From assembly GCA_001643675.2 (NCBI GenBank), contig LSRY02000008.1, forward strand, positions 496,001-560,000: a stretch of DNA of 64,000 nucleotides, read 5' to 3'. The DNA comes from Monocercomonoides exilis PA203 (lineage: Eukaryota; Protista; Preaxostyla). Both the position numbers and the translations under genes were made by a program. Below, piece after piece: positions 28,507 through 59,275 of the stretch (within the stretch, counting starts at the first letter, position 1; each line of letters begins with the position of its first letter). The notes below the pieces were generated by a model. The model had not been told where the DNA came from. It saw only the letters and a list, made by a program, of their open reading frames with translations, and did no database searches.

Positions 28507-30991
28507 TCATTCTTTCATCCAAAGCGGTGGCTCAGTCTCAACGGAATATTTCCAGAGATCTGACATTGTCATTCCACTCTTGTCTTTGAGTGAATTGTAA
28601 TGTCTCATCCACTCCGGAGGCTGTGTATTGATATTTTTTATCCAATGCATTGCCATTGTCCTTCCATCCCTGTCAGAAAGAGCAATTCTATGCCTCATCC
28701 ATACTGGTGGTTCTGTCTTCACATATTTAATCCATCCCATTGCCATCGTTTCCCCGTCTTTATCTTCAAGAGCGTTTCTGTGCCTCATCCATTCTGGCGG
28801 GTCTGTTTTAATCCAGAAAATCCAATTCATTGCCATTGTCCTTCCACTCTTATCAGAAAGTGCTGCATCATGTCTCATCCATTCAGGTGGCTCTTTTCTG
28901 ACATGAACGATCCACTTCATGGCCATTGTCCATCCATCCATGTCTGCAAGCAACTTGTCATGTCTCATCCATTCTGGGGGTTCTGTTTTCACATATACGA
29001 TCCATATCATAGACATTGTCCGTCCGAATTTATCTGCAATCGTATTGTCATGTCTCATCCACTCAGGAGGTTCTGTTTTTTTCTCCATAATCCACTTCAT
29101 CGATAATGTCCTTCCATCATTGCTGCCTTGCGCGTTATCCATTGTCATCCACTTCGGAGGCTCTGTCTTGACTTCCCTTATCCACCACATCGCCATTATC
29201 CTTCCATCCCTGTCAGAAAGCGCAATTCTATGCCTCATCCATTCTGGTGGCTCTGTTTTCACATATTCGATCCACAGCATGGCCATTGTTCGTCCAAACT
29301 TATCGGCAAGTGTGTTGTTGTGTCTCATCCAATGTGGTGGCTCTGTTTTGACACTTTTGATCCACAGGATCGCCACTGTTCGTCCAATCTTATCAGCAAG
29401 CGTGTTGTTGTGTCTCATCCATTCTGGTGGATCTGATTTAGCACATTCAATCCACCACATGGCCATCGTCCTTCCGTTCTTGTCGCAAAGTGCAGCATCG
29501 TGCCTCATCCATTTTGGTGGGTCTGTTTTAACAAACCAAATCCACAGCATGGTCATTGTGCATCCGTTCTTATCAGAAAGTGTAATGTCGTGTCTCATCC
29601 ATTCTGGTGGTTCTGTCTGAACATATTTGATCCACTTCATCGCCATTGTATTTCTCAGGACATCGATTCGTTCTATGTCATGTCTCATCCATTCTGGAGG
29701 TTCTGTTTTGATCTCTTGAATCCAAAGCATGGACATTGTCCATCCGTCTTTATCAGCAAGTGTAATATCGTGTCTCATCCATTCTGGGGGTTCTGTTTGA
29801 ACAAACTGAATCCAGAACATAGCCATTGTCTCTCCACCGCTATCGCGAAGTGTGATGTCGTGCCTCATCCACATTGGTGGCTCTGTCTTCACATTTTTGA
29901 TCCACAACATTGCCATTGTTCGTCCAAACTTATCGGCAAGTGTGTTGTCGTGTCTCATCCAATTTGGTGGTTGTGTCTTTTTCTTAATAATCCATCTCAT
30001 TCCCGCTGTTTGTCCATTTTTGTCTTTCAATGTATCATCACATTTCATCCATTCTGGCAATTTAGGTTTCACATAAAATTTCCAATAATCTGCCATTGCC
30101 CGTCCTTTCTTGTCTTTCAATGAATTGCAATGTCTCATCCATTCTGGTGGCTCCTTTTCAATAGATTCGATCCAGAACATGGCCATTGTCCTTCCTTTCT
30201 TATCGGCAAGTGTAATGTTGTGTCTCATCCAATGTGGTGGTTCCGTCTTCACATGATTAATTCATATCATCGCCATTGTTTCTCTGTTCTTATTAGTAAG
30301 TTTTATATCATGTCTCATCCATTCTGGAGGTTCTGTCTTCACAAACTGAATCCACAGCATGGCCATTGTCCATCCGTTATTATCAACAAGTGTAGCATCA
30401 TGTCTCATCCAGACTGGTGGCTCTGTCTTGATTTCCTTTATCCAATGCATGACCATTGTATTTCCTTCCTTGTCTGCAACTTCGTTGTTATGTCTCATCC
30501 ACTCTGGTGGGTCTGTCTTAGCATTTGCAACCCATATCATGGCCATTGTTACTCCGTTATTGTTGCGAAGTGTGATGTCATGCCTCATCCATTTCGGTGG
30601 ATCTGTCTGAACATATCCAATCCACAGCATGGCCATTGTCCATCCATCTGAATCTTTAAGTGTTGCATCGTGTCTCATCCATTCTGGTGGCTCTGTTCGA
30701 ACAAATTCAATCCACAGCATTGCCATCGTCATTCCATTATCATCATGAAGCGTTGTTTCATGTCTCATTTCCAATGGAGGTTCCATTTTCTTTTCAATAA
30801 TCCATCGCATTGCTTCTGTTCTTCCATCCTTGTCCCTTTTCAATGGATCACTTTTCAATTTTTGCATATCTGTTGTATATCTTATTTTACCGCTCAACGC
30901 TTCGGTTTTGCTGCTCGTCCTGCAATATAAGCAGAAAAAATGTCAATCGTTAAAAAGTATTATTTGAAATAAATATTATATACTTGATCAT
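28507..30991 (-). pseudogene. 30-aa ankyrin-like repeat protein, copy B (about 806 codons, about 26 repeats), with one in-frame TGA at 30262-30264; 8-nt first exon 30991-30984, intron 30920-30983
   Basis: ORFs 30262-30897 and 28507-30252 are in the same frame. The TGA replaces the invariant Trp (MAMI*INHVKTEPP). ATGATCAA|GT...TGCAG|G splices in frame. Confidence 0.8.
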
Positions 30992-31537
30992 ATTTTTTTT
31001 TTTAAATACTGTTTGTCATCTTTAAATAAATAAGAAAATGAGCATAAAGTGATTGCACGATTTTTGACAGTGTGGCATTTTGTTATTCAAACATTTTTTC
31101 AAAACAATTTTAACTTTTTAATATTAATTATTCAAATTTTTATTTCTTTTGACGTTCGTTAAACAAGTTGTAAGTGAATGAAAATGAAAAGCCAAGTTGT
31201 GAAAAGTAATAAACCTGTGAATTAATGTTGAGTCTTATTCTTTTTCTGCTCTTTTGCTTTTGCACCAAAACTCTCAGAAACAAAAGTTGAATTTTAACCA
31301 ACTCATTTCTTTTTTCTTTTTTATTTTTAAATTCACATTTCAAATCGCTTCAGGGATGCATTCATTTGGATCAGCCACAGCAACAGTTGAGTGAGTGAGT
31401 GTCTGAGGGTGTGGCAGAAGAGAAGGGAAAGATGAATGCCATTCACTCCGATGGAGAACATGCACATTCTGAAGAGAGGCTGAAATGCTGCCTTTGGAAA
31501 GGAAATGGCTGAATGAAAAGACAAAAACGATAGGGCA

Positions 31538-31586
31538 AAAAAGAGAAAAGAGAGAAAAGAGAGAAAAGAGAGAAAAGAGAGAAAAG
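31538..31586. repeat. (AAAAGAGAG)n 9-mer tandem repeat, about 5 copies
   Basis: Read directly. Confidence 0.8.
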
Positions 31587-32049
31587 GGAGAAAAAGAAAA
31601 AAATGGATGTTTGAATGGAAAATGGGAATGTTCAGAGCAGATGGACAGGAAAAGAATCTGACACTCAACATCATTCAGAATGAGAAGTGAGAGAAGAAAA
31701 ATTAATTGTGAAAATGAGAAAGGAGAAGGAAAAGGAAAAGGAGAAAAAGGAGGAGGAGGATAAGAAGAAGAAGAAGATGATGATGATGGTGATGATGATG
31801 ATGAATAGAATAATTTTCTTCATCTTCTTCCTTTTCTTCTTCTTCTTCTTTGAATGCATTTTTTTTTAGACCTTTCAATTTTGGCGCCTCAGTTGCTGAT
31901 AATGTATAATGTGACCACAACAAAAAGGAGAAAATGTTTCACAAATTTTTTATAAACAGGTGAAATAGGAGGTGGAGATAAAAAAGAAAAGAAAAATAAA
32001 ATAAAAAATAGAGAGAAATTGAGAGAAAAAGTTGAGGAGTGCCCAATCA

Positions 32050-33900
32050 GCGGTTGAGGAGCAACAAGAAGTTTCGACGTCGCACACAATAGCCTCCTCC
32101 TTTGAGCGAGGCAATGCGGAGCACACAGGAATTGGAGCAGATGAAGTTGGTCCAGGAAGAGAAATAGTTATTTTGGATGTTGGGAGTGCTGAAGGAGAAC
32201 AATAAGCAATTGAGGCATCCACGCTCACACTCACTTCCTGCCATTGGTGGAGATTTTATCTAACTGTGCACCAGAGATGCTCGTATCTTTGATATCAGTT
32301 GTTGCGCTCGTATAATGGAACAGAAAAGCATTCCATTTACACACACAGACACACACACACTTTCTCTCTCTTGTGTCTCTAACGCTTTTTGTGAATCTGG
32401 TTCCTCTGGCTCCTCTGGCTCCTCTGATTCTTTTTGCTCCTTTGATGCATCGGCAGCTTCATTCTTGCCAGAGAGGTTTCCCAATGAAGCCTTGTGGTGG
32501 CTGCAAAGTGAACCCAATTGTCAAAGATGCCTCAAGTTCCACTGAAGAGCGATGAAGGAATACGGATGAGCTGGCAAGAGATGAGGAAGACACATTCAGA
32601 TCAATAGAACAGTCTGTAAGATTGACTGCAGTTGTGCAGCTGTTTCGCTCTTATATGTTGTGGCAAAGCTGATTGAACGAGATGGATGTGAAGGAAGAGA
32701 ATGTTGTTCTGAAGCTTTCTGACAGATTTGTTTTAGAAAAATGAAGAAGAACATCGCTTTCGCTAATAATTGCGAGAACTGTTGTAAAAAGATGCCTTGC
32801 ATGGCGCCTGAAGCCATCGTTGAACACGAACGTTGTTGTAGCTGCCTTGAGAGCGAAGAGGTTGATGTGGAAGAGAAAGAGGCAGGAATTGGGGAGAGCT
32901 CAAAGCAGCGTGTAGCTAAGATGGATATGCTTGTCTGATGGAGAAAAGATCCAAGTGGAAGCAATGAGTGATCTATCGAGAAGGCAGAAGAGTGAAGAGT
33001 GGACTGATTCGAAGGAGGAGTGGAAGGAGAAGGGGCAGAAAGTGAGGATGCAGGTGTTGAGAAACACAACAACAGAGAGCTGAAGAAGGAGAAGCGAATA
33101 GAAACAAGACTTTTCGAGACAGACCAGATTCGAGTGTTGGTGAGGCAACTCAAGCGGTTGATGTGAAGGACTGCTGCAGAGAGGGAAGCACAGGAGTCAA
33201 GAGGAGGAACCTGTGAACTGGCTAACTAATATCTGTTGGGCGAGGAAGAAGGTGATGAAGGGAAGAAGATCGACATGAGGTTGGAGCTCAGCAGGGACGG
33301 TAGATGCCGGAGCAGTAAATAGTGGCTTTTGTGGTTAGAGAAGGCCTTGTGAAGTTGGGGAAAAGGAGGAATATACTGACTTGATAGAAGATGCAAGAGC
33401 ACCGGAGAAAGACTTCGTTCAAGGCGAAGAAGAGGTTGAGGATGCAGAAACAGATGGAAGAAGCGTTTGCAGGCGGATTGCAGTCGAGGCACGCTATTGC
33501 AGCCCCCCCTCAGACCTGCTCTTCGCTAACACAGCCTGTGAATACAGATGACTCGGCCAAGCAGTTTACTGAGCATCTCCTCTTCACATACACATACAAA
33601 AACAGAGCCATTTTTCTGTGTGTGAAAGATGTTGGTGATGTTTGCGGATTCCAGAATGATGACTGTTTTGGTGTCTGGGGCAGGCAGCCCCGAATCAGCG
33701 GAGTTAACCAGAACAAACGGGCAGATGGCAACACGAGATGCAGGCCCAACAAGCAAAGAGAAAGTGAACGGAGGGATACGAGTTCCACTGAAGGGGATGC
33801 AAAAACGATGTGGAAAAAAGGAAATGATAAGGATACGTGGACGATGGTTCAGCTCTTGAGATACATGCGCCCTTCTGTTTTATTAACCATTGCATGAGCA
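32050..33900 (-). pseudogene. Decayed fragment of a Ser/Cys/Phe-rich multicopy gene family (unknown, possibly a surface protein)
   Basis: Coding-like composition broken across frames. 32890-33085 is homologous, in inverted orientation, to 35985-36170. Confidence 0.4.
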
Positions 33901-34599
33901 ACGAGCATAAACTGAGTATGTGTGGAATACGAACAACAAGACAAAAGCAGCGAAGTCAAAAGGGTAGATGCCTAAATCAATGATAAATGATGAGGAGGAG
34001 AAAAAGAAAACCAGAGGAGAAGCAATGCTTTGAAGATTCGAAAGGAGAATCGTGTTTATTGGTGTGGAGAACGTTATTTTGGAATAAAAGGTGTAACTTC
34101 ATGAAATATTCAGTTTTTTATTTAACATTTTCAATCACATTTTTTTTATTTTGCTTGATCAACAAATCAATTATATCACAAATTTTTTTTATTTTTCTGT
34201 CCGATAATATATAAACAAATAAAATAGTTGTTTGTGCAACAAACAGTTAACAATGATTTCGAATTGTTGTTTCTTTATTTATTTTCTTGTTTTATTTTGA
34301 TATTTTTGTCCAACAGATATTATTATTTTTATTCATCCTTTTTTTCAACAAATGTTGTTTTTGAATAAGAATATTATAAACATAAATATTTAATTATTAT
34401 GTGACAGATACCAATAAATGAACAAAATGAAAAAAACCGGAATCTAAAATGAAAATCATGCAAAAGAATTTTTGTATTATTATTTGCTTTGTATTTTTTT
34501 GCAATAATAATTTTTATTGAATAAAAATAAACAAAAATTCTTTCCCAATCACATGGAATTCTTCAAAAACCGTTTTTCAACAAAAGAATCGGAATTAAT

Positions 34600-35181
34600 G
34601 CTTTGTTGAATGAATTATGCAAAGAATACAGGACAATATCGGTTTCTCAATGACTGCAAAAGGAAAAATTCTGATAATTTTTCTCGAAATAAATATTATC
34701 AATGAAAACTCTTTAAAAATACGAGAGTTTCATTTTCGTGTTGATTGAATGAAACAACAACAAAAAAATAGGAAATATTCGGAGATACAAAATATCATAC
34801 AGTTTGTGCATAAAATACCGGACATCGCTAAAAATACCGGACAAGTCGAGATCTCAATAGCCGCAAGAGGAATAATTCTGACAATTTTCCTCAAAATACA
34901 CCTCATCAATACTAACTCATTTGAAAAACAAGACTTCACTTCAGCTTCATTTGTGCTCAGAAAAAATATATTTCGAAATCTCGGAGAAACTCAAAATCCT
35001 ATTTCTCTGGTTTTTTTTTAAAAATAAATTTCTTCTGTGCATAAATGAAGCTATTTTGAAAGTTTTGTATTTCAAATGAGTTTGTATTGATGAGATGTGT
35101 TTTGAAGAAAATAGTCAGAATTATCCCTCTTGCGGTTATTGTGAAATCGATCTTGTCCGGTATTTTATGCACAAATTGTAT
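34600..35181. repeat. Foldback inverted repeat (arms about 34797-34973 and 35022-35181) plus an older direct copy at about 34600-34735
   Basis: The two arms translate on opposite strands to near-identical strings (IQFVHKIPD...ARGIILTIF.K.HLINTNSFE). AAAATACCGGACA is duplicated in the left arm. Confidence 0.85.
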
Positions 35182-35959
35182 TTCTATAATATATTCAAAA
35201 TTGTTATTCATAATATTCAATTGGTTTGAATGGAAAAGTTTTGAATGTTAAATGAGTTAAAAAAGACGAGTTGGGTGATTTTTTTTGATATCATAAAAAA
35301 TTACGAAGTTTGATCATAAATTTTTTTCATAAATGGTGGGGTTGAATCGATAAAATATTTGTAAAATTGAGCGAAAATATAGTTTAATATATTGTTGTTG
35401 TTATTTAAAAGTTGTTTTTTAATCAACACAAGTTGTTTTCATAACAAATATCTAGATATAAAAATAATTTCCGAAAAAAATATCGAAATTTCAATAAACA
35501 TTGCAAAACATAAGTTATCTTGCTTGAAAAGCAAGATAATAATTGTTTCAATGCTCAATAAATCAATTTTTTAAATGAAGAATGTCAAATAATGTTATAG
35601 AAAAGAAATTTCAAAATTGACGTTGAAGATCCAAAAAAATATGTTGAAAAAAAACAATTATCGAAAACACAAAAACAAAAATATGAAAGTTATGCAAGAT
35701 ATTTCACAGGTGACCAACAGTTTGCAGTATCCTTCGATTTAATAACAAATAATTCAAAAAAGAACTTTAAAAGATTTATTCGTTAAAAGAAGTGACAGAT
35801 GAAAATAAAAAAAACATTGTTTTAAAAAATAAAACAATCCAATTTGTGAATTTTCATTGTTCGCACAAAAAATGCTTCCATCAAACAAAATTCTTCACAT
35901 GCTTTTTTTCATCTCTCTCTCTCTCTCTCTGTCTTTCATCCTCTTCCAAGTCTTTTTTA

Positions 35960-36620
35960 TTCTTCTGGATGTCTTCCTCAGATGCTCTGCTGTTGTCACC
36001 TTTCTCAACTCCTGCATCCTCATCAGCTTCCACTTCTCCTTCCACTCCTCCTTCGCATCTGCTCACTTTTCCTTCTTCTCCTTCCTCGACGGATCCCTCG
36101 CTGTGAACTCCTCCCTCTTTTCCGAAGCCGACAAGCCTGTTAACCTCAACTCCACACTCCTTTGTGCTTCCCGAGGAACCCTTCGCCTCTCCAACAAATC
36201 TGTCCATTCCCTCCACCTCACCTGCTTTGATCTTCGCGCACTTCCCGCTAACTCCCTTTCTTTCTCCCAAGCATCAACACATCTGCTATCCGTTTTTCCA
36301 GCCTGTGTTCCTGTTTGACGATGGCTCCAGCTGCTCCCTCGAGCATCTCATTGCAACAGATCTTGCCGTTGTTGCGGGCAGCGTTGTTCTTCTCAATCCT
36401 CTGGCTAATCCCCCTTCTTCTTCTCCTTGAAAATCAAATCAGCCAAAAAGCTTCTTCAGTATGATGACTCCGTCTTCACCTCTGCCTTGTTAGGCAAGAT
36501 TTAATGTTGTGTTCACGTCTTCATCATTCAACTCACCAACAATAGCAGCGCTATGCAGAATAACCACTCCATGCTCAGCAACCTCATCTGCTCAGATGCA
36601 GCCGTACTCAACATTTCATT
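35960..36620 (+). pseudogene. Decayed paralog of the 32-34 kb family fragment
   Basis: FLNSCILISFHFSFHSSFASAH vs FLNTCILTFCPFSFHSSFESVH; stops and frameshifts present. Confidence 0.4.
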
Positions 36621-37220
36621 GCTTTGGAAAGTAAAATGAACGTTCCCTGGTTTCAATAAGTGGATTTTCAACAACGAAGGAGTTCTCCTGAGCACCAACT
36701 CTCAGTGCCCTTCCTCGCTCTTCGTATCTGTGCTTTAGGGCTGTCATGAATGAGTGGTTACATATAGGATGATTCAGATATTCAACGAACTGCTTCAAAC
36801 TTTGTTGTCACTTTCTGTTTTGGTTCATCATCGTTATCTCTTCAAACTTTTCATCTTTTCCATATTTTCTTTTTTTCTTTAAAAATCTCTTCAATTTATT
36901 TTCCATCCAATTTCCATTCATCGTATTCTGTCTGAAAATGTTCTTATTTCTCTAAATATTCACTCTCTTCGTCATCTTATCAATCTTCTTCTCATTTTCA
37001 ACGTGTTTCTTTTTTTGGATAATGCCCTTTTATATTCTCAAAAAATATCTTATTCTGATGCCAAAAATGAAGAAATCCAATCAAATGAAGTGAGCGATGA
37101 TGGTTAAAGAGTGTGAAATGATGTTTTTGGTTATTATGAAGAAGTTTGAAATGAACAGGAAGAAGAAGCCCAAAAATCAGAAAAAGTCGGTGGAGAAGAA
37201 AAATAATAAAAAATGTCGAA

Positions 37221-37288
37221 GAAGAAGAGGAAGAAGAGGAAGAAGAGGAAGAAGAGGAAGAAGAGGAAGAAGAGGAAGAAGAGGAAGA
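37221..37288. repeat. (GAAGAAGAG)n, about 7 copies
   Basis: Read directly. Confidence 0.9.
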
Positions 37289-38549
37289 GAACGAAGAAGA
37301 AAAAGAAGGATTATGAGATATCGCAGAAGGCAGAAGCGGAGAAGACGAATTAATAAGTATTGAGTTCATCGTATTTCTCACGGATTCGGAGAATTTCATG
37401 TCTTTGTTTAAGAGTTTTTGGGATTGGATGAGAGGAATATAGGAAAGGTGAGAAGTGAAACAGAAAGAAAAGAGGAAGAGGAAGAGGAAGAAGAAGATTG
37501 CCGCATTGACATAAGCAGAGCAGGGACGAAAGTTGCAGGTAAAGATGAAAGAGCATCCTTTTTTAAATGAGGAAGTCTACAAAGAAAAAAGACTCCGCAT
37601 CGCAGAATTCTTAGGAATTTCTTCAGATGGCTGGTAGAAAAAAAGAAGAAAAAGATCAAATTGAGAAGAAAATGAAGGAAATGTTTGTTGACGATGCTGA
37701 AGTGGAAGAGAATGAGTCGAAGGAAAAGGAATATTAATTGAAGATGGAGAATAATTTGATGTGAATGACGGAGAAGAGGGAGAAGGAAAAGGAGATTGCG
37801 AAAGTTAAAAGAGATGTTACTGAGAGGATGTGATGCTTGTCTGCAGCTTATGTGGAAGCGTAGTTGAGAATTGGTCTATCTTTATCTGACAGGGATGTTC
37901 TACTCCTCCTCCTCTTCCTGTTCCTGATGCATTTATCGCATTGCCAACTGAAGTTGTATTAGCTCCATCAGCAGCAGCGTTTGAAGATCCATTCATATCC
38001 TGTGCGTTTGTTGCAACATTCGATACCAATGAAGTAGACTGAGGCTCAGATGTTTGCTGAACGGAAGCAAAAGCGGAGGGTGTGGATTGTTGTGTGAATG
38101 AAGCACCAACAGCCTTCAACAGCTGAATGAGAGAGGCAGAAATGGACATCGAAGGAGAAGAAGAAGGTTTCTGGTTATGGTGTGTCTCGAGAATGGCTGA
38201 TATTTCGTGGAACAAGGTCTTCTTCACCATCAACTTGCGAAGAGCGGTTGCAACAGCGTTGAGTGCAGTGGTCGTGGCCAGTGTACGAAGCAGCAGGTGA
38301 TTGGACTAAGCGGCAGAAGGGCCGAGGTGTTGCATGGAGAACGAGATGATGGAAGGTGTTGTGCTGGAGGATGACATGGACTGAGAATCAGAAAAAGAAG
38401 TGACGCATGAGGTGAATAGAGAAGGGATGGAGAACACGAAGATGAAGTGAAAGATACTGAAAGCATTTTTGAAAGAAGAGTGTGGACGATGGAAGTGAGC
38501 GGGTGCGAAAAAGGGAGAGGGGGACACGTAGACAAGAGGCACCCATGAA

Positions 38550-42682: not shown

Positions 42683-45600
42683 CAAGAAGAAGATCATATC
42701 TCCTTGAAAGAAAATCTTGAGAAGATTGAGAAAGAAGAGAAGAGTTAAATGATGTGATATCAGAGTGAAATGACTTCCTTGTTCGTTGAACTTTTTCTTT
42801 CATTGTCGAAGATTCGAGGGCAACCAGAGAGCGTTGAGGAAGATATCCAACAGCTGAAGCAGAGACAAATGAGCCTTTGCACTCAAAATACAAGTAGTCC
42901 TTCATGTGAGGGACTGACAGCGATGGCCATGAGATTTGTTGAGATGGTACATATTCTTCAAAGTACCTCTCTTGCTCAAAGTTATTGACAGATGTTGAAG
43001 ATGGCGAAGAGTTTGATGACGTTGTTGAGAAAATGTTTGATTGTGAAGTTGAAAAAGCTGATGTCGAAACATTCATATTGTTTTCGAAGAAGTTGATCAA
43101 GTCATGAAGTGTGGTGATGTGTTTTGTCGAAAGATTGTTGTCGATTGCATTAACTAACGAACCAAATTCACTATCACAGATATTCTTTCCATGGTGCTCA
43201 GCGAAGAAGTTGAGTTGAGTATTTTTCTTTTTAAGAAGTTTTGATTGCTTGGAGAGGATGAAGTGAAGAAGGAAGATATTTCGGTTGTGTGGACCCGAAT
43301 CGCAGAAGAACATAAAAGTGTGAGTGTCTGTGAAGAAGCGTCTTTTGATCATAGATTCCAGACACTCAATAACAAATCTGTGATCATTTGAAAGGAAGTC
43401 GGAGAAGAAGTTGAAAGTTTTTTTTATTTGTTGATTATTAATTTTTTGAAGTGAGATGATTGTGAATTGGGAGACTTGTTGATAGTTAAAGAACTCTTGT
43501 TGAAGTTGGTTCTTTCGGATTGGCAGTTTCCACTTCTCTTTGAGGTCAAAAACGAAGACTTCTTCTCTCTCTTTCAAATTATCAACAGTTGATTGATAAT
43601 GTATATGTTGCATTTCTGCAACGAGACGATGTTGTCGAAGAAGTTTTGGAGTGTGGAACTCTGCTTCAGACAGTCCATTTTTGTTTTGGGATGACTTTTA
43701 TTTGTTTTCCAAATAATCCAACTTTTCACACATTCCACAAAGGTCAGTTCGTCTTTTTGCTTTGGAGAAGTTGGTGGTGAGTTTGTAGATGTGGAGCAAT
43801 GAAACTTTGATATTTGTTTCTTCGGAAAACTATTTCCATAATTTCGTCTTGGGCTTGAAGATTAATCTCTTTTCATTGGGAGAAAAGATGCCCGTTTTCT
43901 TTCGTTTTTCTTTCAGTGCTTCCAATCCATAACTTGTTGAAATTGACGAAGAAAGTGGAGGAATGGAAGTTGAACGATGAGGTGGAGTGATGAATGGAGA
44001 CGATGTTGTTGTTGTTGTTGTTGTTGATGTGTTATTTAAAGTGTTGTTATTTGATGTTTCTGAAGAAGAGGAGGAACCACCAAATTGAAAAGAAGACAGT
44101 GTTGGCTTTGTTTTTTCTTTGATATAGAATGAAAGTGAAGGTGTGTAACCCTGGGAGAAAAGATCTTTCCATGATGAATTCCAATTATCTTTATCAAATT
44201 CCGAAACACTTTCATCATTGCAAATATTCCACAATACATCACTTCTTGTCTTCCTTTTCACAACTGCGATGTGATGTCCGTTTTGTTGATCCAAACGTTT
44301 GAATAGTATTTGTCCAGAAAGTTGATAAATGATCGTTTCCTGATTATCTTTTTGAAAAAGTTGAATGTTTTCTGTTGATAACCCTTTGCAGAAAGTGCGC
44401 TGGTTAACACGATCAGTTACAATCAGAAGCGTTATCGAAGATGCAGAACAAGCAGAATCAGTGCATTCATGACAGAGGGCCAGCACATCTGGAAATGCAG
44501 CCATTTCCTCCCATCTCGCAGAACAACATTTATCCTTGCGTGCATCACAATAAACACTATTCTTTCCATTTAAAACTTCAGTCGCAAAAAGAGATGATAG
44601 ACAGTTGTGAGGAGAAGAAGAATTGATAACGATATTGTTTCACATTTCATCGAAACGGTTTGATATTTTTTTGCATTTTTGGCATTTGAGATGAGTGATT
44701 AAAACAGGATTGAAGGTGTCCTTATTTATCAACTCATCTTTAAGAAGAAGTTGGTGAAGGTTGTCAAATGCCTCATCCACGTTTTGCTGCTGTCTGCTTC
44801 CATATCCACAAAAGTCTTCCCATTTGTTGATAAGAGATGGAACCCACGAACGCACTGTCGTTCCATCTTTAGCCAATTGTTGACAAACCAGAACAACACT
44901 CAAAGATGCGTTCTTTATTGCTGTTTGTTTTTTGTAAAAAGATGGCTTTTGTGTGATGATAGAAGACATGCATTGAAGAAGAGATGCAAGATAGAATGTG
45001 TTTCCAAAATTGATTAATCCTTTTATTGATGTTGATGAAGAAGAATGTGATGATATAATTTTTGAAGAGGTTGATGAAGAAGGAGAAGAATTTGAATGAG
45101 GAAAATCTGTTTGATTGTTATTCATCGTGATCTATGCAGTATTATCATGATGTGAAATAACATTCTCATCGGATGGTGTGTTATGTTGAGAAGAATAAGT
45201 GTTGTTCTCTTTTGAAAATGATGAAAAAAGATTCTGAAATGCTTGTGGTGGAATTAGAGCCGGTGAAGTGGCATATTCATTTAATTGATCACTAACACAC
45301 ACATCATCGTTGAAAAAGGAAGTTGAAGATTCTTCAATAGAAAAAGAATTTATATTTTCTTTTTCTTTCTTTTTGAAAGATGTGGAGGATGAGGAGGATG
45401 AAAAAGAAGAGGAAGAAGAGGAAGAAGAGGAAGAAGAGGAAGAAGAGGGAAAAGAAGAAGAAGAAGCAGAAATAGATGAAAAAGGAGAAGAAGAGGGAAA
45501 TGAGGAGGAGGAAGAAGAAGACGATGATATTAAAATTGGAGAAGAAGAAGAAGAAAGAGAAGAGGAGGAAGAAGAATCCAAAGAAGAAGAATTAAAAGAA

Positions 45601-46720: not shown

Positions 46721-47809
46721 CGAGAATTAAGAGTTGATTGAGGTTTTGAAAAAGACATTTTTATTTTGAAAGTGTTTTTATAATGGTTTGATGATATTAG
46801 AGATTCATAAGCAGTTGTTTGATTTAATAATACTTATTTTTTTATTCTTTAATAATGTTAGGGTTTTGAATTGACCCCAAAAAAAATTGACAAATCGAAT
46901 AATAAAAGATCTTCCAAAAATAAATAATTCATATTTATTACTATCCTTCGGAAAATTTCCGAAAGTTCAAAACTGACATGAATTTTATCTCCTTTTCCAT
47001 ATCATCAGAAAAAAATATAACATCAAACAACAAAATAATTATCATTTTGAAAAATGATAATAAATATTTAGTAACAAAAAATGAGCATCTCTATCACAAT
47101 AAAAGTTTTATATAAAATAAATATTTTATTTGAGAATATAAAATGTCACAACAAATGAATAAATTGGAATTTTAAAACAATTTTATTTAAGAATAGTTAT
47201 TAATTTTAACAAAAAGTTCATTTTTCAATTGCGAAAAATAATAAAGAACAAAAATATATTTCATCGATAGAAATTTAAAAATGAAAAATTTTTTTTCATA
47301 AAAATGTTTCAAAAATATTCTTTCTGAAAATCGTTCAATTTGATCTTTTCGATCAATAAAAGATTTAAATTACTTAGAAATTTACAGAAATCGTTTCAAT
47401 GCTTATTAATCACTTCTTTATAACATTTGTACCATTCACAGTCAAAAAATTATCATTTCTGCAAATTGCAGATCAACAAAAAATTCGAAATTTGAAATGG
47501 GTTTATAGCATGAAATATAATATTTGATTATCTTAAAGAAAACTTCGCTTATTGAGGAAATCGGTTTATGCATAATTCAATTCTTAATTTAATTTTTCTT
47601 TTTCTGTTAGATTCAACAAAAAATACGCCCAATTCACTTCTCTTCCATTTGACACAAATAATGTTGTTCTCTCTTTTCGCCTCTTCTCGTAAGAAGCAAC
47701 AGAAGAAAATATTTTCTCAATTTGTTCGAAAATAAACATATTTCGTCTGTTTTTTCATCTATTCCACTTCCTTCCTCCTCTCCCTCCCATGATGTTTACA
47801 TACAATTAT

Positions 47810-50263: not shown

Positions 50264-50312
50264 TCGAAAGAAGAGAATTCTGCGCATGGAAATGGAATGG
50301 AATCTTCAAATG

Positions 50313-50894
50313 TTTCTTCTTCTTCTTCTTCCTCTTCCTCTTCCTCTTCCTCCTCTTCTTCCTCTTCCTCTTCTTCCTCTTCCTCTTCTTCCTCTTCTTC
50401 CTCTTCCTCTTCTTCCTCTTCCTCTTCTTCCTCTTCCTCTTCTTCCTCTTCCTCTTCTTCCTCTTCTTCCTCTTCCTCTTCTTCCTCTTCCTCTTCTTCC
50501 TCTTCCTCTTCTTCCTCTTCCTCTTCTTCCTCTTCTTCCTCTTCCTCTTCTTCCTCTTCCTCTTCTTCCTCTTCCTCTTCTTCCTCTTCCTCTTCTTCCT
50601 CTTCTTCCTCTTCCTCTTCTTCCTCTTCCTCTTCTTCCTCTTCCTCTTCTTCCTCTTCCTCTTCTTCCTCTTCTTCCTCTTCCTCTTCTTCCTCTTCCTC
50701 TTCTTCCTCTTCCTCTTCTTCCTCTTCCTCTTCTTCCTCTTCCTCTTCTTCCTCTTCTTCCTCTTCCTCTTCTTCCTCTTCTTCCTCTTCCTCTTCTTCC
50801 TCTTCCTCTTCTTCCTCTTCCTCTTCTTCCTCTTCCTCTTCTTCCTCTTCCTCTTCTTCTTCTTCCTCTTCTTCCTCTTCCTCTTCTTCTTCCT
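50313..50894 (+). repeat. 582-nt pure C/T tract of TCT/TCC units (poly-Ser, about 190 codons)
   Basis: No A or G on the + strand. Built from 15-nt and 9-nt subunits, often as a 54-nt higher-order unit. Confidence 0.95.
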
Positions 50895-53800
50895 ATTCTT
50901 CTTTCTCTTATTTCTCATCTTTTTTTATTTTCTTTTCTTTTTCTTCATTTTCTTTTTTCTCTTCTTCCTCTTCTTCCTCTTCTTCTTCCTCTTCTTCTTC
51001 AACATCATCATCAAAAACAGCAGCAGTCAAATTCCACAAGAAAGAAAACGTAGATAACGATTCATCTTCATCTTCCTCTTCATCCGAACAGTCAGAAGTG
51101 AATTCTTCACAAGAAAGAGCCGAAAAAGCTGAAATCGACGAAATCATCGAACGCTTCAAAAGAAAACATGCACTGCGTCTGCCTCTTCCTGTGATCCTTC
51201 CCCCACAAGAAGCATCTCTTCAGAATCCGTCTTATGTTCCCTCGAAGACTAAGACTGAGAAAAAGCAATAAAAATTTAACACAAACCTTTTTTTCTATTT
51301 AATTGCTGGCATTGGCACAGGAACAGGAACATCTCCTTCTTCTTTGCCCAATGAATTTTTTCTTTCTCTTTGTCAGCCATCTCCTTCTCCCTCTTCTTCA
51401 TCTTCCCCATCTTCTCCAGCAGTAACTGACCTCTCTCCCCACCCCAAACCGCCTCACCGTTCTGAAATTGCTATGGCTCGCCGCATAAGAGCAATGCATC
51501 CTCTCCTCCGCCGAAGCTATCTCAACCGCTGTGCACAAGTGGCTGCTGTTTCTGGCGCTTCACGTTCTTCTTCTTATTCCTCCTCCTCTTCTTCTTCTTC
51601 TTCTTCCTCGTTGCTTCACTCTTCAAGAAACAGATTTCTGACTAGCGAAGAGCAGCAGATGAGGAGGATGAGGCAGCAGTTCGGAAGAAGAAGGAAAAGA
51701 CAATATTTTGTTCTCCCACAAGATGTGTTTGAGGCGCTGCCGCTGTTTGCAGAGATTCGGATGGTGGAGCGGTATTCGGAGACTCTGGAGAAGAGGAAGA
51801 GAGAAAGAGAGAGAGCGAAGGAAAGAGAGAGAGAAGCAAAGAACGAGAGAAGAGAGGGAAAAAAGGAAAAGAGAAATGATTAAGATGAGGAAGGAATTAA
51901 AGCCTGAAAATGATAGTGAAAGAAATGATGATGAAAAAGAAAATAAAGTGAAAGCAGAAGAAAACGAGAGTTTATCATTGATTAGAAGAGATTCTTTGAA
52001 GGAACCGAAGAAAAATGAAGAAAATGAAGCTTTTCATATAACTCCATCTTCAGCCATGAAGACAGGAGAAGAAAGATGAGACACAAACAGAGATAAAAGC
52101 TGCTTCGGCTGATGAAACAACATAAAATTCAGAAGAAGAAAGAGAAGGAAGAGCGGGAGCTCAGGAAAATGGAGAAAATGACGAAGAAGATTGAAGAAAA
52201 AGACAAGAATCTGTAAAGCAGCATCCAAGAAATATAACAATCACACCTTGGGACAGGCACACCGACCAACAAGAAGGAGAACAAAATGGCAAGTGATGCG
52301 CAGCAAGAGGCGAAAGAAAGCAAAACTCGATTTTTGACAAGAGAGTGGAAATTTGACTGCACACTGAATGCTTTAGCAAATTCCGACTTAGAATATTTGA
52401 GTGATGAACCGGATATGCCTTGTCGCTATGTGCGTATCAAAAGCGAGGAAAACGGGCAATTTGTGTGGAAGATGCGGAGAGTGCCTGTGTATGCAGCAGT
52501 CGACGCGAGGCAGACAAGAACGCGGTTGGATCTGATGAGAACGCTGAAGAGTGGGCTGAGGCAGAGCAGGGCAGAGTTGAAAAGAGGAAGAGGGATGAAG
52601 TGAAGGGGCTGGCGGCCGTCCAAAGAGGAAGCAGAAGTGACACACAGAAAGGGAAGGAAAGGAGCAGGAAAAGGATAACCGCAACTGTTTCAGAAGGAGA
52701 AAGGGGCAAGAACATTCAGAAAGAACAGCGTGCCTGGAAGAAGAGATGCGCTGTGGTTCTCAATATTGGTATCTTTTCTCACTTCGTAGAATTCAATGGC
52801 GATGGATCTGATACAGAAATACCCTACCCACAATTTGGTTGCGCTTTTTGATTCATCTGCAGATTTTGTTACAAATATAAAAGTCGCTCTTAGTCCTCTC
52901 TCTAACTGCACTTCTTCGCTTGTCGATTCATCCTTTTTTATGAACATCCAACTTCAATCTTCTTCTTCTCTCAGAACATTTTTACCTCCTTCACTGCAGT
53001 CCCAAGCTAAACTTCTTTCTTCTGCTTTTCCTGCTATTCCTGAACCACTTTTTTCACTTTCACTGCCTGCTCTTTCTTCATCTACTTCTTTTTCATTCAA
53101 CTATTATCGAATTCAGCACTGGAAATTATCTATCGTTGCTATTTAGAAAGATACACAGAAATGCTTATTCAAAGAATGAATATCAGCTGATATTATATGT
53201 CAACGGAAACGATTCTATTTTTTGCATAGAAAAGCTGATCAGAGGCATACAATCAGCAAGAAAATCTATTCTGACTTTTTCATTTGGATGCTGAAGCATT
53301 TGAAGTGAAAAGGAAATGGTGTTGATGCTATTTTTGTTTGGAATGGCTGGGTTCCTAAATAGACTTCAGCAGGTTACACAGCTACGAAGTCACAGTAAAT
53401 TGTTGGAAATGAAACAATGAGATAAAGCGATTTTTGGGAAAAATCATGTTTGAAGGGAAGTCATATGAGATTCTGGTACGAATCGGATGCAAGCAAGTTG
53501 AAATCGGAAAGGTGAAGAAATTATAATCTGAAGAAAATTGTCTGAAATATATGAATATATTCTTTTTGAAAGATACGACAGCAATGAATCTTTTTTCATG
53601 AGCTTAATTTGTAGTTGATGAAAAGAAAAAATTGGATGAAGAAATGTGGAAGAAATATTTTTGTCTTGCTGATGTTAAGGATTTTGGTAAAATTAAGTGA
53701 TATGTTCTTCAGTTGAAGAAGTGATGAAGCCTCATGTATTTTTCTATGACATGGAAAATGGTGAAAATAAGAAAATGGAAGGAATAATATAGAAATCAGA

Positions 53801-54518
53801 AAAAAGTCATTATTTCCTGTTGTTTTTGTATCAACCGCGCTGAAGGTGAGTGTTTGAAGAGTAACAAATATTGAGGTGAGGAGCGTGAGAGAGGCGTCTT
53901 GGAGGAGGGAAATGAAGCCGTTGAGGGTATATTCTATGGTGGCACATGGGGTCTGATCTACTCTACCACAGGCATTAGTATCAGTTCCGCTATTGGAAAC
54001 GATTTTATTCTGGGCAATGAGGGAAAGTTAGCTGTTGAACTTGGCTTTATCTAATGTTCCACGATTTCGTTTAACGTTTGATGAATCCGATGAACCGAAT
54101 AAAAGGAATGGAGATTTGTTGGCTATACAAAGGTGAGGGGGAAAAAAGATAAATAACTATTATTGATAAATTGGTTTTAAAAATTTTGTTTTCTTATCTT
54201 CTTCTTTGTTCTTCTTCATAATTTTTTTTTCTTTTCAATATTTTATTTTCCAATTATTGGAATTGTTTTGCAGGTCTGGAAACTTCAATTTTTATTTTAA
54301 AGATAGATTTTTCAATTTTTTTTAAAAAAACTTGATCAAAAAATTCTTTTTAACTTAAAACATTATAAAGTTATGCTTTTTTTCATAAATAAATAAAACA
54401 AATAAATGTCTCATCAATACGAACTAAATACTCATGAAAAATCAGTACTTGTTCACTGATCAATAAAAACCTCATTAGATTTTATTTTTTCAATTTTTGA
54501 TCTTTTTTTATGTGCGGT

Positions 54519-55082
54519 ACAGAATTCTAGCATATATGAAAAAATAAATGATTTGTTCCAAACTTATTCTTCAATCGTATTATCACAATCCTGACATTCT
54601 CGTGCAAAAAAAATATAGAAATTTTAAAAAGTTGAAAATAGTCTTTGAAAGAACTGTGTGGAACTATATTCACAAAGAAAAAAATTTTGTCCCATATGGC
54701 TGATCCTTTTTGAAATCATACTTTTGTTCGAGTTTTGAGCAAAATTTTGATCTCAATGGGATTTTCAAAAAAAATACATATCCTTTAAAATATCTAAATA
54801 TGATGTATGTATTGAACAATATCGTTCATTTTGCAATAATCCCATTGAGAAAAAAATTTTGCTCAAAACTCGAACAAAAGTGTGATTTCAAAAAGGATCA
54901 GTCATATGGGACAAAATTTTTTTCTTTGTGAATATAGTTCCACACAGTTCTTTCAAAGACTATTTTCAACTTTTTAAAATTTCTATATTTTTTTTGCACG
55001 AGAATGTCAGGATTGTTATAATACGATTGAAGAATAAGTTTGGAACAAATCATTTATTTTTTCATATATGAAAGAATTCTGT
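54519..55082. repeat. Near-perfect palindrome/foldback: 245-bp arms (54519-54763, 54838-55082) with a 74-bp spacer
   Basis: The arms are reverse complements with about 7 mismatches counted by eye. Confidence 0.95.
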
Positions 55083-56298
55083 TCCAATTCGTCTCCAAAG
55101 AAATATAACATTTGGGACAAAAAATTTGACTTCAGGCATTTTTCATTGAAAAATTATGCATCTCGGATGAACTTTTTGTGATCGAAAATTTTGAAATAAA
55201 TGGGTTTATTTTTTGAAATACATGCGAGATCACACAACATGATGTTATTATATCAATGATATTTGCTTGCAGATATGAAAATCAAATTTATTTTGAAATC
55301 TGGTTAAGTTTCAAAATGTTATAAGTGAAACAACTTTCACATGCTTTGTTCATAAAAAGCTTGAAAGACCATATTTCTCCCCATTTGAATAAAATTCAAG
55401 AAATAAAAATTTTTTTCAAAAATAATCACCCTTGTCTCAACAAAAGACTTTGTTTTAAAATTTAATAATTCATGCGTTTTATTGAAGAAAAATAACCGAT
55501 TTTGTAATTTTCGATATTTTTGTTCAAAGAAAATCCAAAAATGAATGAAACTCATTTTCGGGGAAAAATGAGATTAAAAATGATATTGATATAAGTAACA
55601 ACAATTATTAATGATACACAAAGACTTCTTTCACTTTTAATTTTATTTATGTTCTTCCACATAGAGTTTTTTTTATGAGGTTATTCAAAAAGAATGAAAT
55701 ACACATTTTTAATTTGTCATCAAATTGACGATATTTGAAATTTATAAAATCCTCAAATAATTGAAAAGTTTTTTTTTTCAATCAAATAATAATTATTATA
55801 AAAGTGACAGTGCTTCATTGATTGACGAAAGCTTGTATTTTTATTATATTCATCATCATGAAAAGCTGAAAAATACCGTGAAATAAAAATTTTATTCGAA
55901 GTTGAAATATAAGTTTCGAAATTGAATAATTTTTGGTGTATTAATTTTGATAAACAAACAGCAGCAGCAAATACTACAACAATGAATAAAATAATAGTAA
56001 TTATTATAATAAAAATAATTATTAAAAGATTGAAGTGTGAATCAATAATTGTTGAATGAGATGATAATACAAATGTGGACAAGAGGAAAGAGATTCAAAT
56101 GGAAATACATTGAAGTGAGTCCAACTCATATCGATGCATATGAAGATACAAATAAGAGAAGAGAGAGGAACATGAAATGCAACATGGATTCTGTGTAATT
56201 GCAACGGAACTTAAGTTCGATGATTTGATCAAATGTTTATTCGAACAAACATCGAAAATGTTTTCAATATCCTAAAACTAACACATGAATTGATAAAT

Positions 56299-59275
56299 TC
56301 AACCTTTCATCCAAATTGGTGGTTCAGTCTCAATGAAATATTTCCAGAGATCTGACATTGTCATTCCACTCTTATCTTTCAATGAATTACAATGTCTCAG
56401 CCATTCTGGAGGATCTGCTTTGATATTCTTTATCCAATGCATCGCCATGGTGAATCCTTCTTTATCACCAAGCGTGATGCTATGCCTCATCCAATCTGGC
56501 GGTTCTATCTTTGCATGTCTTATCCAATGCATAGCCATTGTCCTTCCACTTTTATCAGAAAGCTCTGCATCGTGCCTCATCCATTCAGGGGGCTCTTTTC
56601 CAACGTGAATGATCCACGTCATCGCCATTGTCCTTCCATCCCTGTCAGCAAGCGCAATTCTATGTCTCATCCACTCTGGTGGCTCTGCCTTCACATATTT
56701 AATCCATCCCATGGCCATCGTTTCCCCGTCTTTATCTTCAAGAGCGTTTCTGTGCCTCATCCATTCTGGCGGGTCTGTTTTAATCCAGAAAATCCAATTC
56801 ATTGCCATTGTCCTTCCACTCTTATCAGAAAGTGCTGCATCATGTCTCATCCATTCAGGTGGCTCTTTTCTGACATGAACGATCCACTTCATGGCCATTG
56901 TCCATCCATCCATGTCTGCAAGCAACTTGTCATGTCTCATCCATTCTGGGGGTTCTGTTTTCACATATACGATCCATATCATAGACATTGTCCGTCCGAA
57001 TTTATCTGCAATCGTATTGTCATGTCTCATCCACTCAGGAGGTTCTGTTTTTTTCTCCAAAATCCACATCATCGCAAATGTCCTCCCATCCTTCTTGCTT
57101 TGTGTGTTATCCATTATCATCCATAAAGGAGGTTCTGTCTTAACTTCCTTTAACCAATGCATTGCCATTGTTCGTCCAATCTTATCAGCAAGTGTGTTGT
57201 CGTGTCTCATCCATCCTGGTGGTTCTGTCTTGTTCTCAATGATCCACCTCATTCCCGGCGTTTGTCCATTTTTGTCTTTCAATGTATCATCAAATGCCAT
57301 CCATTCTGGAAATGCAGCTCTTGTATAAAATTTCCAATGATCTGCCATTGTCCATCCGTCCATGTCTGCAATCGATGTGTCATGCCTCATCCATTCTGGT
57401 GGTTCTGTCTTGACATTATTAATCCATATCATCCACATAGTCCACCCGTCCTTATCGCTTAGCATCTTATTATGTCTCATCCATTCTGGAGGTTCAGTCT
57501 TCACATTCTCTATCCACAGCATTGCCATTGTTTTCCCTTCCTTATCAGCAAGTGTGTTGTCGTGTCTCATCCATCCTGGTGGTTCTGTCTTTTTCTCAAT
57601 GATCCACCTCATTCCCGGCGTTTGTCCATTTTTGTCTTTCAGTGTTTCATTAACTGTCATCCATTCCGGTAATTTAGTTTTAACATATATTTTCCAATAA
57701 TCTGCCATTGTCCTTCCGTTCTCGTCTTCAAGTGAATTGCAATGCCTCATCCATTCAGGTGGCTCTGTTTTTTTCTCCGCGATCCACTTCATCGATAATG
57801 TCCTCCCATCCTTCTTTCCTTGTGTGTTATCCATTATCATCCACAGTGGAGGATTTGTTTTGACGGTTGCAATCCAGTGCATTGCCATTGTTCGTCCTTC
57901 CTTGTCTGCAACTTCATTGTTATGTCTCATCCAATGTGGTGGTTCTGTCTTTACATGATTAATCCATACCATTGCCATCGTATCTCCATAATTGTTACCA
58001 AGTTCATTATCGTGTCTCATCCATTCTGGTGGATCTGTTTTAACACCTTTAATCCATATCATAGCCATTGTCCATCCATTCTTATCGGCAAGTGTAATAT
58101 CGTGTCTCATCCACTCTGGTGGTTCTATTTGAAAAAGCTGAATCCAAGCCTTGGCCATTGTCCAGCCATCCTTTTGAGAAAGTGTAATATCATGTCTCAT
58201 CCATTCTGGTAGTCCTGTCTTCACATGACAAATCCAATGCATTGCCATTGTCCTTCCACTCTTATCAGGAAGTTCCGCTCCATGTCTCATCCATTCAGGT
58301 GGCTCTTTTCCGACGTGAATAATCCATATCATAGCCACTGTCCAACCATCCTTCTGAGTTAGTGTAATATCGTGTCTCATCCATTCTGGGGGTTCTGTTT
58401 TAACAAACTGAATCCACCACATAGCCATCGTTTTCCCGTTCTTGTCGGAAAGTGTAGCATCGTGCCTCATCCATTCTGGTGGCTCTGCTCTGATATTCTT
58501 TATCCATAGCATAGCCATTGTTTCTCCATCCTTATCCTTAAATTCATTTTTATGTCTCATCCATTCTGGTGGTTCAGCTTCAGTAAACTGAATCCACAGC
58601 ATCGCCATTGTCTCTCCACCGCTATCGCGAAGAGTAATATCATGTCTCATCCATTCTGGTGGCTCTGTTTTGACTTCTTGAATCCAATTCATCGCCATTG
58701 TCCTTCCACTTTTATCAGAAAGTTCCGCTTCATGTCTCATCCATTCAGGTGGCTCTTTTCTGATGTGAATGATCCACGTCATGGCCATTGTCCATCCGTC
58801 CATGTCTGCAAGCACCTTGTCATGCCTCATCCATTCTGGGGGTTCTGATTTATTCTCTATGATCCAGTGCATGGCCATTGTCCTTCCTTCCTTGTCTGCA
58901 AAAGTTATGCTATGTCTCATCCACTCCGGAGGTTCTGTTTTTACGTATTTAATCCAGTGCATTGCCATCGTACGCCCATTCCTATTCTGAAGCGTGTTTT
59001 CATGCCTCATCCATACTGGTGGCTCTGTTTTAACAAATTGAATCCATAGCATGGCAATTGTTGCTCCGTTATTGTTGCGAAGTGAAACATCGTGTCTCAT
59101 ACATTCAGGTGGTTCTGTTTGATTCTCCATTATCCATAGCATCGCACTTGTGTATTGACGTTCATTATCCTGTGATTTTATTGCCTTCGCGTTATTGCCC
59201 ATGTTACTTGGCTTTTTAAGTTTGATCCAAAAATAATAAAACAAAAAATAAATTATGGAATGAAAACTTGATCAT
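56299..59275 (-). CDS. 30-aa ankyrin-like repeat protein, copy C (about 971 aa, about 32 repeats); 8-nt first exon 59275-59268, intron 59207-59267
   Basis: Open ORF with the same repeat consensus. ATGATCAA|GTTTT...CCAAG|T splices in frame to give MINNMGNNAK.... Confidence 0.85.

Follow-up and report, generated by a model that had tools for sequence, protein, structure and literature searches.

In the lamprey VLR system, as in VSG, vlsE and msp2, an incomplete or unique expression-site gene is found together with silent partial cassettes and the product is surface-exposed; assembly of lamprey VLR involves a cytidine deaminase. Clustered multigene families, the plant NLR/LRR clusters among them, are subject to unequal crossover as well as to non-allelic (interlocus) gene conversion. 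For the WD repeats of the Podospora anserina HNWD genes (het-d/e/r), concerted evolution, experimentally shown instability and a recognition function have been reported (PMC2873952).

The stretch of DNA analysed here (referred to as the window) comprises 64,000 nucleotides, C80:496001-560000, of a Nanopore assembly of Monocercomonoides exilis, and contains the genes A, B and C, members of a family that numbers at least 60 loci in the genome, about 29 of them on contig C80. M. exilis is a gut protist and a eukaryote without mitochondria. A first-pass annotation had described A, B and C as mosaics assembled by ectopic recombination, and exchange between paralogues is indeed borne out by tracts of 77-440 nt with 99-100% identity, abrupt edges and flanks of differing lineages.

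The repeat family and its predicted fold

The ORFs of the three genes are built of a tandem repeat of 90 nt, or 30 aa, per unit, in which the framework codons T-M-A-M-x-W-I and E-P-P-E-W-M-R-H are conserved.

7897..9813, + strand: gene A, ORF with translation, 638 aa, about 20 repeats of 30 aa
28507..30867, - strand: gene B, 786 codons, one in-frame TGA at 30262-30264
56299..59202, - strand: gene C, 967 aa, about 31 repeats, three capped modules

Family statistics cover 28 genes, and the donors named below are the nearest among these 28 copies; more collinear, better-matching relatives of C may exist beyond them. Eighteen of the 28 lie wholly within the DNA examined, with their own start, stop and caps, and the remaining 10 extend past the edge of the examined locus. 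ORFs of 600-1660 codons with a perfect 30-codon register are intact in 27 of the 28, the protein arrays run gap-free at 30 residues per unit, and the copies have conserved flanks of about 0.5-1 kb. The main text of two M. exilis genome papers (including PMC6759080) makes no mention of the family.

Structure prediction places these proteins with the ankyrin repeats, as putative ankyrin-type solenoids. Foldseek matches in the PDB include ankyrin-1, AnkB, NOMPC and DARPins at E values of 1e-24 to 1e-9 (best for A, 2.6e-24), and the AlphaFold2 model of A has a mean pLDDT of 90.1 with a sole internal dip at residues 331-350. Gene A consists of two capped modules with their junction at residues 337-348, where an internal C-cap-like unit is followed by an N-cap-like unit. 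Pfam Ank models gave no match to A, B or C even at E <= 1, and a family profile searched against PDB sequences retrieved no ankyrin, only spurious designed-TPR matches. A phmmer search with A reached P0139 at E 5.4e-9, a protein carrying 12 Ank_2 stretches, and the intermediate P0008 has a whole-protein Ank_2 score of 29.8 bits (cut-off 27.3) with no single stretch passing alone. The likeness to the ankyrin repeat superfamily lies in the stacked helix-turn-loop solenoid; the period is 33 there and 30 residues in the A/B/C family, whose second helix is cut to a 3-residue turn and whose framework is Trp- and Met-rich. What has been identified is a Pfam-invisible, 30-residue ankyrin-like repeat with a capped multi-module architecture.

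The N-termini of the family proteins are hydrophilic, and no signal peptide was found in the 28. A membrane-spanning segment is likewise absent, the maximum 19-residue Kyte-Doolittle mean staying at or below 1.58 throughout the 28 proteins, with the exception of an in-frame stretch of L005 upstream of the family's conserved start.

Identical tracts and their edges

The three nucleotide identities originally reported all proved exact: 346 nt between B and C (28742-29087 = 56714-57059), 101 nt between A and B (8854-8954 = reverse complement of 29996-30096) and 54 nt between A and C (9358-9411 = reverse complement of 58411-58464). Gene identity on the diagonals that carry these blocks is 69%, 69% and 62%, respectively, and shuffling of the mismatch positions produced no run longer than 45 nt in 20,000 trials. 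In 273 pairs with an off-contig member, the longest shared exact string had a median of 31, a 95th percentile of 40 and a maximum of 72 nt, so the 346- and 101-nt blocks are far outside the background, which the 54-nt block exceeds only moderately. Exact strings of at least 54 nt are shared by 33 of 105 same-contig pairs versus 1 of the 273 others (Fisher P 2e-19), an enrichment confounded with subfamily relatedness.

Repeat units across the family share a mean identity of 65.8%, which falls to 52.5% when third codon positions are taken alone. Inside the 346-nt block there are 0 synonymous differences over about 115 codons, bearing in mind that ten Pilon rounds could sharpen near-identity into identity. 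Because third positions elsewhere are so diverged, protein-level purifying selection cannot explain the identity of this block, and by the same comparison the exchange looks recent. The block also occurs in a third gene (C80:358109-358454), at 100% by BLAST and with one mismatch on direct comparison. The tracts concerned are as follows.

28742..29087, - strand: B copy of the 346-nt block, identical in C (exact)
56620..57059, - strand: C copy of the exchanged tract, 440 nt, of which 56714-57059 is exact to B
58841..59013, - strand: C tract near-identical to L005 (C80, about 383 kb), 173 nt, 2 mismatches

Over its 440 nt, the C tract is 98.9-100% identical to B and to B's near-twin L008, from which it differs at 5 positions. 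Right outside both edges, which are a few bases wide, identity is about 50-70%, with about 30-50% mismatches in the adjoining 100-200 nt. The 5' and 3' flanks of C are homologous to L002, L003 and L013 (on the 5' side also to L005) and in this comparison did not match L008; the flanks of B match L008, L017, L022 and L028. Abrupt-edged near-identity, incongruence between tract and flanks, and synonymous identity confined to the inside of the tract, all marks of gene conversion, are found together in C. At the single site separating B and L008, C agrees with B, too few sites to polarise the event. Painted with its relatives, C is a patchwork in which the best donor switches after every 1-5 units, and at least 8 genes take turns in that place. 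In L005 the 5' flank is of C type but the 3' flank of A/B type, and because of this L005 appears to be a crossover chimera.

Shorter tracts in A extend this picture.

8854..8954, + strand: A copy of the 101-nt block common to B (29996-30096), exact
9335..9411, + strand: A copy of the short A/C tract (C 58411-58487), 77 nt, one mismatch
8359..8456, + strand: intragenic duplicate in A, identical to 9079-9176, 98 nt, unit type 'O' (LRDSGGET module)
9628..9810, + strand: 3' end of A, resembling L005, 183 nt, 6 mismatches

The 101-nt block is nested in a region of about 450 nt with about 90% identity (A 8696-9143 / B 29807-30254). The 77-nt tract contains the 54-nt exact run and ends within a unit, right after the W-I codons. 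One of the two 'O' copies of A stands in the usual family context, F-C-D-O-J, and the other is ectopic.

B and L008 (C80:356254-358686) align without gaps over 2433 nt and are a recent duplicate, the duplicated stretch being at least 4.1 kb. The TGA of B corresponds to TGG in L008 through a single mismatch at B nt 681, and B is probably a very young pseudogene. Outside the divergent patches the two differ by 7 isolated mismatches (about 0.4%); the patches are 28-154 nt long with 13-46% differences, and those of 28 and 58 nt equal other paralogues exactly.

30322..30349, - strand: B patch, 28 nt, 13 differences from L008; B version = L011 100%, L008 version = L022 100%
30034..30091, - strand: B patch, 58 nt, 12 differences from L008; B = A 100%, L008 nearest L017 (93%)
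28588..28741, - strand: B patch, 154 nt, 20 differences from L008; partly nearest L005 and A
29197..29593, - strand: B/L008 repeat-unit rearrangement, one-unit register shift and a duplicated RIAL-type unit

At the 101-nt A/B block it may be L008, rather than B, that carries the converted patch, since the 12 extra L008 mismatches sit just there. Homogenisation of the B/L008 coding region after an old duplication was considered on account of a 5' flank only 92.5% identical, and was dropped because the flanks are patchy too; their background divergence is about 1% at both ends. No second copy of the adjacent dynein gene, as a large duplicated block might carry, was among the matches listed.

Unit order, breakpoints and competing explanations

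The initial description of recurrent modules in different orders and numbers in each gene stands in part: the modules are real unit types, each present in 6-13 genes, but the variation was overstated. Unit order is largely shared, with F-C-D-O-J-W-n-K-L common to four genes, and much of the 'shuffling' is common descent with unit gain and loss. In a tree of 250 units, these grouped by type and not by gene, as had been anticipated, with 190 gene-label changes against 186 +/- 4 for shuffled labels and 10 for strict clustering by gene. The tree alone was rejected as proof of recombination, because descent from a multi-unit ancestor looks alike. It had further been remarked that identity switches near framework codons, and descriptively this is true: of 155 run boundaries, 72 lie in 12 conserved codons, where random end points would put about 43, an enrichment that holds against two null models. 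As evidence for a breakpoint hot-spot it was nevertheless set aside, the boundaries being non-independent and nested older homology of the same type predicting likewise.

The best reading, and a highly probable one, is that the clustered paralogues became mosaics through non-allelic gene conversion and through unequal crossover. A, B and C are paralogues, with cytosolic solenoid proteins of a shortened 30-residue ankyrin-type repeat as their predicted products. Because their units have an equal length of 90 nt and share the same framework codons, diverged paralogues could pair in register, and homologous-recombination repair would copy tracts between paralogues in whichever direction, each tract being about 30-450 nt long and spanning at most about 5 units. 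Occasional resolution as unequal crossover would alter unit number and give rise to chimeric genes, and the resulting mosaic arrays would evolve in the germline, not by programmed or somatic assembly. Non-homologous end joining is reported to be missing in M. exilis, and homologous-recombination repair to be comparatively complete (PMC6759080), which makes frequent repair from paralogous templates a plausible genome-wide force.

Such identities might also be created by the assembly itself, through read correction, consensus calling, the ten short-read polishing rounds or chimeric contig joins, and a repeat-rich family assembled with Canu from Nanopore reads, then treated with Nanopolish and 10 rounds of Pilon, invites this suspicion. 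An artefact is very improbable, however, as the reads (N50 8.9 kb) span genes of 2-3 kb and tracts of at most 440 nt into unique flanks, and polishing cannot raise about 70% identity to 100% with edges a few bases wide. The long intact ORFs in perfect register also speak against it, and 28-nt patches exactly matching a third gene are unlike a collapse. Slightly more remote still is a history without ectopic exchange, in which whole arrays were duplicated, units came and went and divergence was uneven, leaving the blocks as slow-evolving remnants. Partial collinearity of unit order, the grouping of units by type expected from a multi-unit ancestor, and the older surroundings of the 101-nt A/B block are all compatible with such a history. 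It is already disfavoured, since 346 nt devoid of synonymous change beside such diverged sequence needs a rate step of orders of magnitude at one base, since the flank lineages of C differ from those of B/L008, and since twins 0.4% apart overall differ strongly in short patches, a pair of these being exact matches to other genes.

Programmed diversification, whether by somatic assembly of the VLR kind or from an antigenic-variation archive in which pseudogenes such as B would act as donors, has an equally slender chance. The clustering of the genes, the recent-looking tracts in register, a possible donor (B) that is a pseudogene and the enrichment of run boundaries in framework codons would all suit it. 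Yet the analogy with VLR cassettes and antigenic variation drawn at first found no support: each sampled copy is a complete gene that has flanks of its own, and promoter-less partial cassettes are absent from the window, where all family matches fall inside A, B or C. The scan for an AID/APOBEC-type deaminase covered 22 non-family ORFs of the window, each >=150 aa, and gave none; most of the remaining ORFs of this size lie within larger genes or simple repeats. Domains in the scanned ORFs comprise dynein, DDE_1 transposase, ABC transporter and UCH, the sole recombinase-type match being the DDE_1 transposase of a neighbouring transposon. Neither a signal peptide nor a membrane-spanning segment marks the products, and M. 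exilis has been described as a commensal (PMC6759080).

Beyond exchange between paralogues as such, C80 might house a recombination-diversified repertoire of intracellular binders in which new unit combinations would be selectively favoured, in roles such as substrate adaptor or sensor, with B-like broken copies as donors and framework codons and flanks as anchors; this is unlikely, if less so than the rivals above. The variable unit positions are 7, 10, 12, 17, 20 and 21, and RING-finger fusions present in metagenomic relatives give a hint of ubiquitin-ligase targeting.

Comparison with known diversity systems

Under gene conversion and unequal crossover, ectopic recombination would be reshaping a large family specific to the M. 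exilis lineage, and gene trees of the family would be unreliable for annotation because segments of one gene have different histories. A new kind of diversity-generating system is not revealed. With VLR, VSG, vlsE and msp2 the family shares mosaic repeat or cassette genes copied from paralogous donors; the hallmarks of those systems, namely partial cassettes, a deaminase, a surface product and an incomplete gene, were not seen in the window or the sampled genes. Unlike the HNWD repeats, the C80 units are not homogenised. The plant NLR/LRR clusters differ in two respects: in C80 the substrate repeats with a perfect 90-nt period, which allows non-orthologous units to exchange in register, and the C80 units, at 66% mean identity, are old and not homogenised within genes. 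What the C80 family and the NLR/LRR clusters have in common is short identity tracts in diverged paralogues, chimeras, mostly linked exchange and homology dependence.

Repeat architecture and ankyrin kinship

Genes A, B and C belong to one family of 30-aa repeats and are accompanied in the window by several other elements.

Features of the window (window coordinates)
7897-9813 (+): gene A, ORF of 638 aa
10839-24371 (-): dynein heavy chain, uninterrupted 4510-aa ORF, intron-free and with the full set of canonical domains
25080-27664: 2.6-kb DDE_1 (pogo-like) transposon with a transposase match, directly downstream of gene B
28507-30867 (-): gene B, ORF with one in-frame TGA at 30262-30264
44640-45125 (-): ORF matching the ubiquitin C-terminal hydrolase (UCH) domain
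50314-51000: (TTC/CTC)n-type array of 687 nt with 15- and 69-nt periods
56299-59202 (-): gene C, ORF of 967 aa

The intron-free dynein gene stands in a genome averaging ~2 introns per gene. Copies of the DDE_1 transposon are 98% identical on contigs C17, C16, and C24, with many more at 78-91% elsewhere, and the transposon family looks recently active. GAA/TTC-rich low-complexity tracts are numerous across the window.

A, B and C are each built as an array of 90-nt/30-aa units in which indels are almost absent. The family statistics rest on 28 distinct genes read (749 units), in which successive P-x-W-M motifs are nearly always spaced by 30 residues or by whole multiples thereof; an intact ORF and register are kept in 27 of the 28. 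A six-frame search of the genome (82,301,135 bp, 101 contigs) returned at least 184 matching stretches, by our count ~29 loci between 44 kb and 1.05 Mb of C80, the contig carrying the window, and ~35 on other contigs. Five evenly spaced matches at C80:446300-452000 (period ~989 nt) suggest higher-order tandem repetition of 11-unit blocks within one or two genes, and two inverted genes with equal scores ~8 kb apart, C80:91520-93427(+) and 100916-102823(-), are probably a palindromic duplicate pair.

At residues 337-348 of A (window 8905-8940), an internal unit resembling a C-terminal cap is followed by one resembling an N-terminal first unit, and this junction coincides with the sole internal confidence dip of the structure model (residues 331-350). 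Two capped modules are present in A and three in C. Such internal junctions were found in at least 12 genes, also within C, and the long genes resemble whole capped repeat domains fused head to tail. The N-termini are hydrophilic, many beginning M-G, and a sequence scan of the family products detected no membrane-spanning segment or signal peptide. Many members start with M-G-N (window 7897 in A, 59202 in C, and the sampled paralogues L002, L003, L009, L013, L019, and L027); a simple N-myristoylation pattern is fitted by A, not by C, and a subset of the family might possibly be tethered to a membrane.

A Pfam search of A, B and C gave no credible match. AlphaFold2, supplied with the paralogue alignment, returned a model with pLDDT 90.1 in which every 30 residues comprise a helix of 9 residues, a helical turn of 3, and a loop, and the best Foldseek PDB matches were ankyrin-1, AnkB, NOMPC, and DARPins (E as low as 2.6e-24). 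Only 208 relatives were found by phmmer among 1.84 billion representatives. One of them is a canonical ankyrin protein (E 5.4e-9); another, an intermediate, exceeds the Ank_2 cut-off by its whole-protein score. On the basis of this fold, these matches, and the links to canonical ankyrin and Ank_2, the family is a strongly diverged, shortened ankyrin repeat. The few relatives from outside this genome are metagenomic proteins in which the 30-residue repeat is fused to a C-terminal RING finger (database relatives P0001-P0004, P0006, and P0010; locus L031), which hints at a function as ubiquitin-ligase adaptor. Two RING genes on L031 are separated by 35 nt; this spacing, with the metagenomic relatives, hints at a compact-genome source.

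Identical tracts and mosaic histories

Three nucleotide-identical blocks had been reported in the first-pass annotation, and all are exact and lie inside the ORFs: 346 nt between B and C (28742-29087 and 56714-57059), 101 nt between A and B (8854-8954 and 29996-30096), and 54 nt between A and C (9358-9411 and 58411-58464). Gene identity on the diagonals carrying them is 62-69%, and permuting the mismatches produced no run >45 nt. In an empirical background of 273 gene pairs involving a copy on another contig, the longest shared exact string had a median of 31, a 95th percentile of 40, and a maximum of 72 nt. The B/C and A/B blocks (346 and 101 nt) greatly exceed this background and the A/C block modestly so; the latter is actually a 77-nt tract containing a single mismatch and ending inside a unit. 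Exact strings of at least 54 nt are shared by 33 of 105 pairs on the same contig versus 1 of the 273 others. Units average 65.8% identity, and 52.5% at third codon positions, so typical unit pairs are ancient and the 346-nt identity is not attributable to protein-level constraint. The 101-nt block is nested in an older region of ~90% identity; the deviant patch there sits in L008, the near-twin of B, and not in B, so transfer could have run either way.

The 346-nt block is also present in L008 (C80:356254-358686), at 100% identity as listed by BLAST. Against this gene the C tract is longer than first described, spanning 440 nt (56620-57059) with 5 mismatches, and its edges are marked by ~30% mismatches immediately upstream and ~50% downstream. 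Gene flanks, conserved at 84-98% over ~0.5-1 kb per side inside subfamilies, join C to L002, L003, and L013, plus L005 at the 5′ side, and B to L008, L017, L022, and L028; the C flanks showed no match to those of L008. These flank-defined gene lineages conflict with the tract. In L005 a 5′ flank of C type is paired with a 3′ flank of A/B type, which makes this gene a crossover chimera. When C was painted in 60-nt windows against the sampled paralogues, its nearest relative switched among at least eight genes (L005, L017, L013, L019, L022, M80/L007, B/L008, and L002), with tracts at 95-100% separated by stretches without a close relative.

B and L008 are duplicates in opposite orientation, separated by 168 kb; their coding regions, 2433 nt each, align without gaps. 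Outside divergent patches only 7 isolated mismatches occur (~0.4%), the other differences being clustered, and the flanks likewise show low background divergence interrupted by patches.

Divergent patches between B and L008
28 nt, 13 differences: B equals L011 at 100%, L008 equals L022 at 100%
58 nt, 12 differences: B equals A at 100%
397 nt: unit rearrangement
154 nt: near the 3′ end

The stop in B at 30262-30264 (- strand) is a one-base difference, TGA versus TGG in L008, a twin of 99.6% identity; either B is a very young pseudogene or its TGA is a residual base error. Upstream of the dynein gene, 605 nt (24400-25004) are 100% identical, inverted, to C80:366881-367485 near L008, and may represent the distal end of the B/L008 segmental duplication.

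Probable recombination among paralogues and alternative explanations

As the first-pass annotation had anticipated, units do not cluster strictly by gene: a maximum-likelihood tree with 250 units drawn from 11 genes gave 190 label changes versus 186 ± 4 when shuffled, where strict clustering would give 10. Twelve genes on other contigs cluster partially by gene (139 label changes versus 262 shuffled), which reflects unit amplification inside genes. The unit tree alone is also expected from descent from a multi-unit ancestor. The description of modules as differently ordered in each gene was overstated, since the unit order F-C-D-O-J-W-n-K-L is common to A, L002, L013, and L003, and G-v-J-Q-w-K-L to B and L008. 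The suggested switching of identity near framework codons is borne out numerically, 72 of 155 run boundaries falling in 12 framework codons versus ~43 for random end points. This enrichment is taken as compatible with homology-dependent exchange and not as a sign of a hot-spot, because boundaries are non-independent and older same-type homology biases them alike. The case for exchange is made by the identical tracts with their sharp edges, by the conflicting flanks, and by the patches between B and L008.

The Nanopore assembly (Treitli et al. 2021, PMC8767320) came from Canu, followed by Nanopolish and 10 Pilon rounds, and an assembly or polishing origin of the identical tracts is considered very improbable. 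The reads (N50 8.9 kb) are long enough to span whole genes, base-sharp edges of 100% tracts in a 70% context are beyond what polishing creates, and all but one of the 28 genes preserve ORF and register. A dedicated diversification system, likened in the first-pass annotation to VLR assembly or antigenic variation, is not supported either. The window holds no partial cassettes, and the sampled genes are complete, each with its own flanks. Among the scanned neighboring ORFs there is no deaminase, the sole recombinase-type protein being the transposase of the DDE_1 transposon, and neither a signal peptide nor a membrane-spanning stretch is seen in the family products.

On the most parsimonious view, paralogous templates are used in homologous-recombination repair, which would yield non-allelic gene conversion with tracts of ~30-450 nt and, occasionally, unequal crossover. 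Equal unit length and conserved framework codons would hold diverged copies alignable in register. Paralogue-templated repair fits the reported absence of end joining and comparatively complete homologous-recombination pathway in M. exilis (PMC6759080). Taken together, the original observation is confirmed and its interpretation survives in part, as exchange among paralogues rather than as a programmed, VLR-like system: the A/B/C pattern is best read as ordinary interlocus recombination in an unusual, undescribed ankyrin-like family. The process is already known, and this family of M. exilis provides a fresh example of it.
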